64,000 nucleotides of DNA, from positions 14,818,001 through 14,882,000 of the forward strand of contig OZ059899.1 of NCBI GenBank assembly GCA_964057225.1, given 5' to 3'. The DNA is from Auanema rhodensis. Taxonomy: Eukaryota; Animalia; Nematoda. The translations under genes and the position numbers were made by a program. A model generated the notes under the pieces. The model ran no database searches and had not been told where the DNA came from. It was given only the letters and a program-made list of their open reading frames with translations. This document shows, in pieces, positions 7,601-61,904 of this stretch. Numbering within the stretch: the stretch's first letter is position 1; every line of letters begins with the position of its first letter.

Positions 7601-7875
7601 ACGTCATATACATCATTATGCTTTTAAGCATAGTATGCATGTATCTCTTTTTCATCTAAAAATAGTTTTAAGGGAGGAAATATTTTGAAAAATCTTTGAT
7701 ATATTTGCTCAAAATATGTTCCAAATTCTTCATCTCCTCTATTTTCTTGATCATAAAGAATTCTGGTGCTTCATCCTTCACATCCTATTCTTTTGAATTA
7801 TTTGATCAACATATATTTTAATGAAGTAATATAACTTATTATATAAAGAATTAGCATATATTTTTGAATAATTAA

Positions 7876-9539
7876 CACCTGAATCATTTGACGTGAATCA
7901 TTTCACGTGAACCATTTCACGTGAATCATTTGATGTGAACCATTTGACGTGAATCATTTGACGTGAATCATTTCACGTGAACCATTTCACGTGAATCATT
8001 TGATGTGAACCATTTGACGTGAATCATTTGACGTGAATCATTTGACGTGAACCATTTCACGTGAACCATTTCACGTGAATCATTTGATGTGAACCATTTC
8101 ACGTGAATCATTTGATGTGAACCATTTCACGTGAATCATTTGACGTGAACCATTTCACGTGAATCATTTGACGTGAACCATTTGACGTGAATCATTTGAC
8201 GTGAATCATTTGATGTGAACCATTTCACGTGAATCATTTGACGTGAACCATTTGACGTGAATCATTTGACGTGAATCATTTGATGTGAACCATTTCACGT
8301 GAACCATTTCACGTGAATCATTTCACGTGAATCATTTCACGTGAATCATTTGATGTGAACCATTTCACGTGAACCATTTCACGTGAATCATTTGATGTGA
8401 ACCATTTCACGTGAACCATTTCACGTGAATCATTTGATGTGAACCATTTCACGTGAACCATTTCACGTGAACCATTTCACGTGAATCATTTGATGTGAAC
8501 CATTTCACGTGAATCATTTGATGTGAACCATTTCACGTGAATCATTTGATGTGAACCATTTCACGTGAACCACGTGAACCATTTCACGTGAATCATTTGA
8601 CGTGAACCATTTCACGTGAATCATTTGACGTGAACCATTTCACGTGAATCATTTGACGTGAACCATTTCACGTGAATCATTTGACGTGAACCATTTGACG
8701 TGAACCATTTCACGTGAATCATTTGACGTGAACCATTTGACGTGAATCATTTCACGTGAATCATTTGACGTGAACCATTTCACGTGAATCATTTGACGTG
8801 AACCATTTCACGTGAACCACGTGAACCATTTCACGTGAATCATTTGACGTGAACCATTTCACGTGAATCATTTGACGTGAACCATTTCACGTGAATCATT
8901 TGACGTGAACCATTTCACGTGAATCATTTGACGTGAACCATTTGACGTGAACCATTTCACGTGAATCATTTGACGTGAACCATTTGACGTGAATCATTTC
9001 ACGTGAATCATTTGACGTGAACCATTTCACGTGAATCATTTGACGTGAACCATTTCACGTGAATCATTTGACGTGAACCATTTCACGTGAATCATTTGAC
9101 GTGAACCATTTCACGTGAATCATTTGACGTGAACCATTTCACGTGAATCATTTGACGTGAATCATTTGACGTGAACCATTTGACGTGAATCATTTGACGT
9201 GAACCATTTCACGTGAATCATTTGACGTGAATCATTTGACGTGAATCATTTCACGTGAACCATTTCACGTGAACCATTTGACGTGAACCATTTGACGTGA
9301 ATCATTTGACGTGAATCATTTGACGTGAATCATTTGACGTGAACCATTTGACGTGAACCATTTCATGTGAATCATTTGACGTCAACCATTTCATGTGAAT
9401 CATTTGACGTCAACCATTTCACGTGAATCATTTGATGTGAACCATTTCACGTGAACCATTTGACGTGAACCATTTCACGTGAATCATTTGACGTCAACCA
9501 TTTCATGTGAATCATTTGACGTCAACCATTTCACGTGAA
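7876..9539. repeat. 14-bp minisatellite GTGAAYCATTTSAY, about 119 units, with variant repeats
   Basis: Tandem GTGAATCATTTGAC / GTGAACCATTTCAC / GTGAATCATTTGAT and related variants. Unit junctions form CACGTG, GACGTG or GATGTG. Two 9-bp deletion units sit at 8565 and 8812. Confidence 0.98.
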
Positions 9540-9668
9540 ACAGTATTATTTCGTTTACATGTAAGAAACAATGGAACGGTTGTTCATCATTGACTTTCAC
9601 TTATTTCATTTGGTTTTCAGTCTAACGACGTAAATAGAACATTAAGAGAGCATGTTCAAGCTATGCCG

Positions 9669-9908
9669 CTAGTAAAATGATTAAAAACTTTATTTGAACA
9701 TCTATGAACATTCCGATTACGTCATAATTACGTCATACGAAAGAAATTGATAATAACATCGAAGTGAGGTCTCGTAAGTACAACGTGGCGCTTGTTCTGT
9801 TATTATCGTGTGAACTTTCTTAACTTTCAATTTCTTTCGTATGACGTAAACATGACGTAATCGGAATGTTCATAGATGTTCAAATAAAGTTTTTAATCAT
9901 TTTACTAG
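9669..9908. repeat. Long inverted repeat / hairpin (82-bp arms, 76-bp loop), possibly MITE-like
   Basis: 9669-9750 is the reverse complement of 9827-9908 with 2 mismatches. Both ends are CTAG and each arm has two TTACGTCA motifs. Confidence 0.93.
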
Positions 9909-9992
9909 AAAAAGCAGTAATTTACAATATTTTATTAATTAATATAACAATGATATTACAATATAATTAACAGAGACATATGACAAGTTATG

Positions 9993-60600: not shown

Positions 60601-61496
60601 GAGACGAACGGCTGAGCATCTTCTATATAAGTGCTCTAAGTGCTGGCGTCAAGATGAAGAGACAAGATGGTTTTCAACCATATAAACTTATTTGTTTTCT
60701 CAAAATATGCGTGATGTTCATGTGGTTATATACTCCAACAAAAAAATACAAAAATAATGAAGAAAATGATAATAATGATTGAAATTCAACAAAATAAACA
60801 AATAAACAAACAAATGAATAAGATAAATCAATTAAAATTATAAAAAAGTTCAATGTACAATGATTAGACTTGTATAGTTCTATGTATAGCTCTCTCTCTC
60901 TTTCTCTCTCTCTCTCTCTCTATCTTGCCGCCAATACTATACTATATATGGAAGAAGGGCGAACACAACTTCAAACGAAACAGAGAGAGAGAGAGCTCAT
61001 TTTAACACATAAAATTATATAAATTTGAGTATTATAAAAAGAAAAATTATAAAGTTTAATAGAAATATATAAATTTTGTATAGTTATAGTAGTGTTTCAA
61101 TGTATTTTAATTAAAAATATTATGTGATATAGAATGTATTTTTGAGATGTACAAGCAGCACATGATGTAAGCAATTCAGTACTAAGCACAGATATAATTC
61201 GTTTTTCTTTTCCTTTTTTTGTCCCAATGTTATCTCTATTCATAGGTTTTGATTATTCAATTCTATATAACATTGAATGACATCATTTTTTTTCTATTTA
61301 TTTATTGATTTTATTGATTTTTTTATTAAAAATTTTATATTTTTTCAGGTTTAAAATCGAATCATTAGTTTGTGGCTGGTCTACAAGTTTGAATAGCAAA
61401 CACTACTCTCTCATTACGAGCATACTAATCATCTAGCACTTATCAACATATCATCACATATTAGTACTACTATAATCATCTGAATTAGAAGATATC

Positions 61497-61720
61497 ATGG
61501 AACTATTACGTGTAGTTGATGGTGAAGCTGATGAAACAGATGGTGAATTGGATATTGGAGATATTAATGTAACAACTGCAAATGAATCATCTAATACTAT
61601 GATTAGAAATATCAATTCAACGAAGACGAAGAAGAAGCCGTTAGATCGTAAATCACAGAAGCGTGAGCTGCAACAACTTAACTTCATAAACAACAATCAG
61701 ACAAGTCCAATCAAAGCAAG
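61497..61720 (+). CDS. First coding exon of an unidentified gene; later exons not identified in this window
   Basis: TTTTTCAG acceptor at 61348, in-frame stops, then ATG 61497. Reads MELLRVVDGEADETDGELDIGD...KTKKKPLDRKSQKRE..., ending at donor AG|GTAATT (61721). Confidence 0.6.
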
Positions 61721-61802
61721 GTAATTTTAAACTTTTTTTCCTTAAAATATGTCCTTTTCTATGTTATTTCTTCTTTTTCTTTTCCATTTTTCTTAACTAA
61801 TA

Positions 61803-61904
61803 TAATCATAAATTTCTATTTTTTACTATTACACGTGAAAAACTGACTTGATTTCACGTGAAAATTGTTATTTTCACTTTTAATGTGAAAATGCATGCGG
61901 TTGA
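61803..61904 (+). promoter_or_regulatory. Dispersed composite element, copy E8
   Basis: CACGTG at 61832 and 61855, CGGTTG at 61898 (43-bp offset). The upstream motif is degenerate (TAATCAT 61803). Confidence 0.45.

Follow-up and report, generated by a model that had tools for sequence, protein, structure and literature searches.

Fly Hox promoters typically depend on a downstream promoter element (DPE), the canonical form of which reportedly begins at +28, a position attributed to the 1996 work of Burke and Kadonaga. In Drosophila, the motif KCGGTTSK (DMp5 of FitzGerald et al. 2006) is directional, precisely positioned and DPE-like, and it co-occurs with the initiator (INR, hereafter Inr), of which TCATTCG is the INR1 variant (PMC1779564). 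KCGGTTSK also serves as a pausing element (PMC6483594). We observed a comparable arrangement in a 64,000-nt stretch of the genome of the nematode Auanema rhodensis (contig OZ059899.1, positions 14,818,001 to 14,882,000; this whole stretch is hereafter called the window), at a locus that holds a LIM-homeobox and an Iroquois-like homeobox gene. Eight copies (E1 to E8) of a cassette of ~110 bp, together spanning ~54 kb of the window, carry an oriented TCATTY motif that is followed ~27-29 bp on by CGGTTG, with no TATA box at -30, and, like the fly Inr + DPE promoters, they are found at a homeobox locus. The cassette differs from those promoters in its nematode host, in a spacing that varies by ±1 to 2 bp and in an E-box that lies 6-8 bp upstream of the initiator-like motif, and its start site is a putative one. 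On balance, we lean towards reading the copies as one lineage-specific, oriented, promoter-type cassette that has been selected for its binding sites and their spacing, and not as repeats of recent origin.

Other described systems resemble the cassette in part. Promoters of the adenovirus major late type combine a USF E-box, a TATA box and an initiator, and the cassette likewise has a TCACGTGA-like E-box of the basic helix-loop-helix leucine zipper (bHLH-ZIP) type a short, fixed distance upstream of its core. In an alternative register of the cassette, transcription would start at CGGTTG, with the E-box near -45 and a T/A-rich block near -28. However, the cassette lacks a true TATA box (nothing of the kind is present in E7 and E2), its invariant -28 block is TCATT and not a T/A run, and CGGTTG resembles no known initiator. 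At C. elegans type-I 21U-RNA loci, which are densely clustered, the Ruby motif CTGTTTCA precedes the 5′ T of the 21U-RNA by ~40 nt. The cassette shares with these loci a short motif ~40 bp from a downstream landmark, a fixed orientation and a multiplicity of copies, but its motif is CACGTG and not CTGTTTCA, its density is low, it is a composite of four motifs over 110 bp, and one copy (E5) stands in the promoter position of a protein-coding gene. As at the promoters of protocadherin variable exons, a common short element is found at several putative promoters over tens of kilobases of one locus; unlike there, no variable first exons are detectable, two copies are reversed, and splicing to a common exon would have to be assumed.

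Architecture of the cassette

From 5′ to 3′, the cassette comprises a homeodomain/POU-like site, E-boxes, a YCATTY motif and CGGTTG (Table 1; offsets are counted relative to the CGG of each copy's CGGTTG). The POU octamer is ATGCAAAT or, on the other strand, ATTTGCAT. A clear homeodomain/POU-like site (AATTAGCATA or ATTTGCAT) is present in five of the eight copies, with the exact octamer in E5 only and the variant TTAGCATA (AATTAGCATA) in E1, E3, E4 and E7. The octamer-like assignment made in a preliminary description of the window is plausible for these five; E2, E6 and E8 lack the site. Each copy holds one to three E-boxes of the TCACGTGA type, often paired, with tandem cores 10-11 bp apart in E2, E4, E5 and E7. 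In E1, E4, E5, E6 and E8 the E-box ends 6-8 bp before the YCATTY motif. Class B E-boxes, the targets of bHLH-ZIP proteins, have a CACGTG core, with T at -4 for the MiT/TFE, USF and SREBP types. CACGTG is found in seven copies, as is TCACGTG, and E3 has only TCACGTA and CATATG; the flanks are TCACGTGA-like, and the earlier assignment of CACGTG to this class is sound.

We found the YCATTY motif by aligning the copies on CGG, and it had formed no part of the criteria by which the copies were selected in the preliminary description. It starts 27-31 bp before CGG in all eight copies, taking the form TTATTT in two (E1 and E8). More narrowly defined, as [TC]CATT[TC], the motif is present in six copies with its first base at -27 to -29, and the remaining two have TTATTT beginning at -30 or -31; alternatively, T[CT]ATT[TC] starts at -27 to -31 in seven copies, the eighth (E2) having CCATTT at -28. 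The binomial tail for this positioning is 3e-10 to 1e-11, or ~1e-8 to 1e-9 when corrected for 76 windows. Since the copies were not picked on YCATTY, its position provides independent support for one kind of element with a rigid geometry.

Re-measurement of the motif distances upheld the offsets that had been described. The distances from the last CACGTG to CGG (45, 41, 41, 43 and 43 bp in E1, E4, E5, E6 and E8) and from CATATG to CGG in E3 (42 bp) are correct, and motif order and orientation are indeed maintained in both reversed copies, E6 and E7. The class with CACGTG at 41-45 bp comprises E1, E4, E5, E6 and E8, and E2, E3 and E7 fall outside it. An upstream TT(A/T)GCAT motif lies at the reported 96, 98, 79 and 114 bp from CGG in E3, E4, E5 and E7, but the 99 bp given for E2 and E6 goes back to weak look-alikes (TTTGCCC and TTTAGCT), and E8 has no such motif. 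The identification of CGGTTG as Myb-like turned out to be weak. When it was tried as a Myb element (YAACNG), only E2 (TAACGG) fitted the form YAACGG, and AAC does not precede CGG in E4, E6, E7 and E8; CGGTTG, the part that stays constant, suits a downstream core-promoter motif better than a Myb site.

We then compared these arrangements with chance expectation. Five oriented CACGTG-(38-48 bp)-CGGTTG pairs occur in the window. None appeared in 300 dinucleotide shuffles (mean 0.00, maximum 0), and random re-placement of the CGGTTG sites gives an expectation of 0.03. Seven of the ten CGGTTG hexamers (both strands) lie inside the listed copies, as do 10 of the 15 CACGTG sites outside the E1 satellite described below. 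TCACGTG, counted on both strands with the satellite excluded, is present in seven of the eight copies versus once in the other 61 kb. The 10-mer AATTAGCATA is found in the window only at E1, E3 (in a palindrome) and E4, and the k-mers TCACGTG, CGGTTGT and TTAGCATA are nearly exclusive to the copies. Looser scans of the window gave no further convincing (ninth) copy. Chance is excluded as the source of the cassette pattern.

Self-BLASTN of the window returned no match between copies, and self-TBLASTX revealed no paralogous genes behind them. In local alignments, copy pairs exceed shuffles solely through their motifs, apart from E5 and E6, which align over ~80 bp (z = 10.7 vs shuffles) and are the sole pair with extended similarity. 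In addition, E3 and E4 have a 15-mer in common at the AATTAGCATA site, and the pairs E5/E6 and E1/E8 have extra blocks in common, such as TTTAAGTGT and TTTCACTT. The earlier statement that the intervening bases are unrelated therefore describes most pairs, with E5/E6 departing from it. As the copies cannot be aligned, their common motifs reflect constraint and not recent copying, in line with the binding-site grammar that had been preferred over a recent transposon. Near-perfect motifs with order, strand and spacing kept amid unrelated spacers argue for selection on the arrangement of the sites.

E1 departs from its first description as an element of ~100 bp, since the positions taken as its two parts, 7849 and 9577, flank a satellite of 1,664 bp on its left and right. 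This satellite consists of ~119 units of 14 bp, [C/G]ACGTGAA[T/C]CATTT, with 52 CACGTG, 47 GACGTG and 4 GACGTC cores and higher-order periods of 28 and 70 bp. It occupies the exact position of the one to three E-boxes of the other copies, and its unit holds an E-box followed by YCATTT, in the order seen in the cassette. Because the unit corresponds to the E-box and YCATTT module, we regard E1 as a normal copy with an expanded middle, in which this module may have grown in place by slippage.

Directly downstream of E1 lies a palindromic unit (10001-12630) bounded by outer inverted repeats (10001-10067 and 12561-12630). Its inner inverted repeat, with 356-bp arms that are 99% complementary (10710-11065 and 11376-11731), is located between two long, diverging, intron-less and unrelated open reading frames (ORFs), 10087-10719 (minus strand, 211 aa) and 11797-12504 (plus strand, 236 aa). 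Pfam gave no match for either ORF, and a word search with 11797-12504, the one of the pair that was searched, gave no homologue. A separate hairpin with 82-bp arms is found just upstream of the unit (9669-9908). An orphan mobile element and a selfish gene pair are possible identities of the palindromic unit.

The cassettes as putative promoters

The cassettes most likely mark transcription start sites. We interpret the cassette as most likely a promoter that lacks a TATA box and combines a nearby E-box with a more distant homeodomain/POU-like site, because TCATTY and CGGTTG coincide with core-promoter elements and -30 carries no TATA box. The initiator consensus TCAKTY fits the TCATTT or TCATTC of five copies, and YYANWYY fits seven (by reading). 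Counted from the A of TCATTY as +1, the first base of GGTTG is at +27 to +29 in the six [TC]CATT[TC] copies, at +30 in E8 and at +31 in E1. GGTTG fits the downstream element RGWYV, and CGGTTG is the core of the fly variant KCGGTTSK. No TATAAA was found at -30 from the initiator-like A in the cassettes, and none of the 29 TATAAAA sites of the window falls inside any cassette. In place of a TATA box, E-boxes are found at -9 to -27 relative to the initiator-like A.

In the process that we envisage, a bHLH-ZIP factor on the E-boxes and a factor at the upstream site would recruit the general transcription machinery. The TCATTY and CGGTTG pair would position this machinery, as TFIID reads Inr and DPE in TATA-less fly promoters, and transcription would start at the A of TCATTY. 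In the alternative register, transcription would start at CGGTTG, and TCATTT(T)AA, near -28, could stand in weakly for a TATA box.

The position of E5 relative to the Iroquois-like gene bears directly on this interpretation. Its CGG precedes the first acceptor of the gene (31388) by 707 bp and the ATG (31419) by 738 bp, and E5 and the gene share the same strand. This is a promoter position, at a distance typical of an outron or a 5′ untranslated region. With E5 so placed, the lineage-specific promoter offered in the preliminary description is probably right. E5, whose position and strand are observed, would act as the promoter of the Iroquois-like gene. E1 to E4 have the same orientation and lie farther upstream, between the 3′ end of the LIM-homeobox gene and the Iroquois-like gene; E4, and perhaps E1 to E3, may be distal alternative promoters or promoters of non-coding transcripts. 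E6 and E7 are antisense to the Iroquois-like gene, inside its 20.6-kb intron, and would drive antisense intronic transcripts. E8 is found 4.2 kb downstream of the stop, where other nematodes have BLOC1S3, and probably drives the next gene. We infer that transcription starts at the cassettes, which factors bind them and what the seven copies other than E5 drive.

Several observations weigh against a promoter function. Seven of the eight copies have no recognisable downstream coding exon, seven of eight have no strong splice donor within 600 nt, and we found no convincing ATG-initiated ORF downstream of any copy. TCATTTC also occurs elsewhere in the copies (at about -80 in E2, E3 and E6, and at +13 in E5) and may therefore be an ordinary factor site and not an initiator. 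The distance from the initiator-like motif to CGGTTG varies by ±1 to 2 bp, whereas the fly Inr-DPE spacing is strict, and -9 to -16 would be an unusually short distance between an E-box and the putative start. C. elegans shows enrichment of the Inr, but none of the DPE downstream of its start sites (PMC3730108). Finally, the cassette is missing from the orthologous loci that we examined in seven other nematodes (237 kb in all). These contain no E-box-CGGTTG pair, and their one initiator-like-CGGTTS pair is a chance match in a coding gene. The cassette is thus specific to the lineage, or to the locus, in the source species. A metagenome-wide scan for the cassette pattern gave 49 matches, approximately the estimated chance number, on contigs of 30-70% GC that look mostly prokaryotic, and none of the matches is cassette-like or nematode-like. 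A literature search for CGGTTG with CACGTG in nematodes returned primer sequences only.

Weighing other explanations

The main alternative, which we consider possible but rather unlikely, is that the copies are distal enhancer or silencer modules without a start site of their own, in which bHLH-ZIP, homeodomain/POU, TCATTTC- and CGGTTG-factor sites are held in a fixed geometry. They would then act as redundant 'shadow' elements controlling the Iroquois-like gene and perhaps the LIM-homeobox gene. The clustering of all eight copies around one developmental homeobox gene, with two of them reversed in its long intron, is consistent with this, as is the scarcity of downstream coding exons. TCATTTC is found at several positions, as expected of a factor site, and the extra blocks common to E5/E6 and E1/E8 look like further factor sites. 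However, enhancers rarely keep the strand, order and ±2-bp spacing of four motifs. It would also be a coincidence under this explanation that the two downstream motifs and their distance match Inr and a DPE-like motif, and that E5 stands exactly where the promoter of the Iroquois-like gene is expected. That the copies are instead decayed relics, now largely functionless, of local segmental duplications or of a promoter-carrying mobile element is improbable. Such an element could be a miniature inverted-repeat transposable element, a long-terminal-repeat element or a Helitron-like element with an internal satellite. The dispersal of the copies in both orientations, the internal tandem array of E1, as in some transposons, the alignment of E5 with E6 and the 15-mer of E3 and E4 all fit such an origin. 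Yet self-BLASTN found no similarity between copies, and the flanks inspected show no common ends or boundary (no systematic search for terminal inverted repeats or target-site duplications was made). Moreover, neutral decay hits motifs and spacers equally, whereas the motifs here are near-perfect and the spacers unrelated.

The preliminary description had also raised small-RNA loci and chromosome-structural sites, and neither proposal fared well. Units of the small-RNA or small nuclear RNA (snRNA) type, whether 21U/PIWI-interacting RNA (piRNA)-like, spliced-leader or SNAPc-dependent, with CGGTTG or the E-box as upstream motif, are very improbable. The ~40-bp fixed offset does recall the distance from Ruby to the 21U start, and short candidate 'exons' followed by GTAAAT or GTAAGT are seen after CGGTTG in E1, E3 and E8. 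However, the Ruby 8-mer is outside the common grammar: the window has seven CTGTTTCA, none on the cassette sense strand, and the only one to fall within an element is antisense to it and borders the E1 satellite. Rfam gave no RNA gene and no match at gathering scores, with microsatellite-hairpin noise only at E <= 1, and there are no tRNA genes in the window. Unlike in spliced-leader or snRNA genes, nothing is conserved 3′ of CGGTTG among the copies, and eight sites in 54 kb are far below the density of piRNA clusters. Least probable of all are structural sites for condensin or dosage-compensation recruitment, holocentromeres or replication origins, which only the regular spread of the copies at intervals of 2-15 kb would recommend. 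A condensin-recruitment site is contradicted by the lack of a MEX motif in the window (GCGCAGGG and related cores), and a search of the window for Ruby, MEX and SL1 motifs gave only absent or irrelevant results. In addition, the cassette motifs are classical transcription-factor and core-promoter motifs, and strict strandedness is not expected of structural sites.

Genomic context and implications

Table 1 Positions and make-up of the eight cassette copies and of the homeobox genes in the window
Feature	Position	Strand	Make-up or basis
E1	7849..9582	+	AATTAGCATA 7849-7858; satellite 7876-9539; TTATTT 9546; CGGTTG 9577-9582
E2 (variant copy)	15806..15885	+	CACGTC -66; CACGTG -55; GACGTG -48; reversed ATGCTAAT 15840; CCATTT 15852; CGGTTT (not CGGTTG) 15880
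E3	21206..21309	+	21-bp perfect palindrome 21206-21226 (AATTAGCATA-A-TATGCTAATT); TCACGTA -59 (CACGTA hexamer starts -58); CATATG -42; TCATTT 21277; CGGTTG 21304
E4	28291..28396	+	AATTAGCATA 28291; TACGTG -68; CACGTG pair, 11 bp apart, 28339 and 28350; TCATTC 28363; CGGTTG 28391
E5	30602..30686	+	ATTTGCAT (TTTGCAT 30602); TCACGTGA pair, 11 bp apart, 30628 and 30639; TCATTT 30652; CGGTTG 30681
E6	38631..38741	-	CACGTG 38717; TCACGTGA 38673-38680; TCATTT 5′ base 38665; CGGTTG 38636-38631
E7	46399..46518	-	TTAGCATA from 46518; TCACGTG -84 and TACGTG -74, 10 bp apart; TCATTT 5′ base 46431; CGGTTG 46404-46399
E8	61832..61903	+	CACGTG 61832; TCACGTGA 61854; TTATTT 61868; CGGTTG 61898
LIM-homeobox (lin-11/Lhx-type) gene, 3′ exons	52..4635	+	sequence, homeodomain match
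TALE/Iroquois-like homeobox gene	31388..57650	+	model from splice signals and reading frames
Iroquois-like gene, exons 1-4	31388-31529 (ATG 31419), 31586-31744, 31791-31877, 36058-36229	+	
Iroquois-like gene, exons 5-7	56829-56953, 57003-57179, 57267-57650 (stop at 57650)	+	

The window has ~36% G+C and is rich in (TC)n tracts, and no part of it resembles human DNA. At its left end, ~26 kb upstream of the Iroquois-like gene, are exons of the LIM-homeobox gene, with homeodomain pieces that end near 150 and are found again at 596-697 and from 2683. The exon at 596-697 matches the Lhx4 homeodomain (E = 5e-12), and 4282-4635 is a possible C-terminal exon. The Iroquois-like gene was modelled with seven exons, with AG/GT at every boundary and compatible phases, and a single 20.6-kb intron extends from 36.2 to 56.8 kb. 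Its third exon scores 26.6 bits against Pfam Homeobox_KN (cut-off 24); apart from the homeobox exons, Pfam scans of 20 long ORFs of the window gave no match.

We queried the exons of the Iroquois-like gene one by one. A word search with the last exon gave no match, and a large profile search with it led to two strongylid proteins. The strongylid orthologue from Cylicocyclus nassatus (P0001) also has a homeodomain and a start of the form MVS..., and a word search with it listed only nematode proteins (from strongylids, Pristionchus, basal Caenorhabditis and filariae), including one with the annotation 'caupolican' but not the protein of the window itself. The MVS... start and three exon groups of the gene in the window match nematode orthologues, and the species is approximately as far from strongylids as from Pristionchus, basal Caenorhabditis and filariae. 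A further database protein (P0002, UniParc UPI00060ADBDA), which fuses a DnaJ-domain N-terminus with the C-terminal half of the strongylid Iroquois-like protein, probably represents a chimeric gene model. BLOC1S3 follows the Iroquois-like gene on the same strand in two Pristionchus species, Dirofilaria and Loa, and the neighbour is therefore conserved. No BLOC1S3 exon was found in the 2.1 kb of the window that remain downstream of E8.

Further features were observed around the Iroquois-like gene. From 14000 to 62000, strand asymmetry is strong (C>G and T>A on the plus strand) and the cumulative GC skew declines steadily. Dozens of (TC)n tracts are found in the same region, almost all showing TC in the sense orientation of the gene (plus strand). 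The asymmetry starts ~17 kb upstream of the ATG. Within the large intron, an open frame of 122 codons (39658-40023, plus strand, 48% G+C) with a clean acceptor, TTTCTAG|TCG, resembles a coding exon; its phase is incompatible with the Iroquois-like gene and it has no Pfam match. We also noted G+C-rich islands at 13111-13541, 19621-20161, 23771-24511, 46661-47351, 48701-49341 and 51031-52021, with a G+C content of 0.51-0.61 vs a background of 0.33-0.36. They contain no convincing coding frame, one of them adjoins E7, and they may represent non-coding sequence that is conserved at the homeobox locus.

If the cassettes are local enhancers only, they would be of ordinary interest. If they mark start sites, they would represent an unusually clean and rigid promoter grammar, in which four motifs are held within ±2 bp while the spacers have diverged, and a downstream-element promoter in a phylum whose model species shows none. 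The E-box, TCATTY and CGGTTG would then serve as handles for start sites that trans-splicing hides, and as a route to dissect transcription of the Iroquois/LIM-homeobox region, including its antisense intronic units. The E1 satellite, a binding-site module grown ~100-fold in place, offers a natural experiment in site dosage. As a tentative further proposal, we suggest that a nematode lineage may use a fly-type promoter of Inr and a DPE-like element (KCGGTTSK), tied to an E-box 6-8 bp and a homeodomain/POU site ~70 bp upstream, and may have deployed it repeatedly and in both orientations across a homeobox locus. If this is true, the locus would hold a battery of unannotated, co-regulated non-coding transcription units, and downstream core-promoter elements would exist in Nematoda, where they can be gained or lost.

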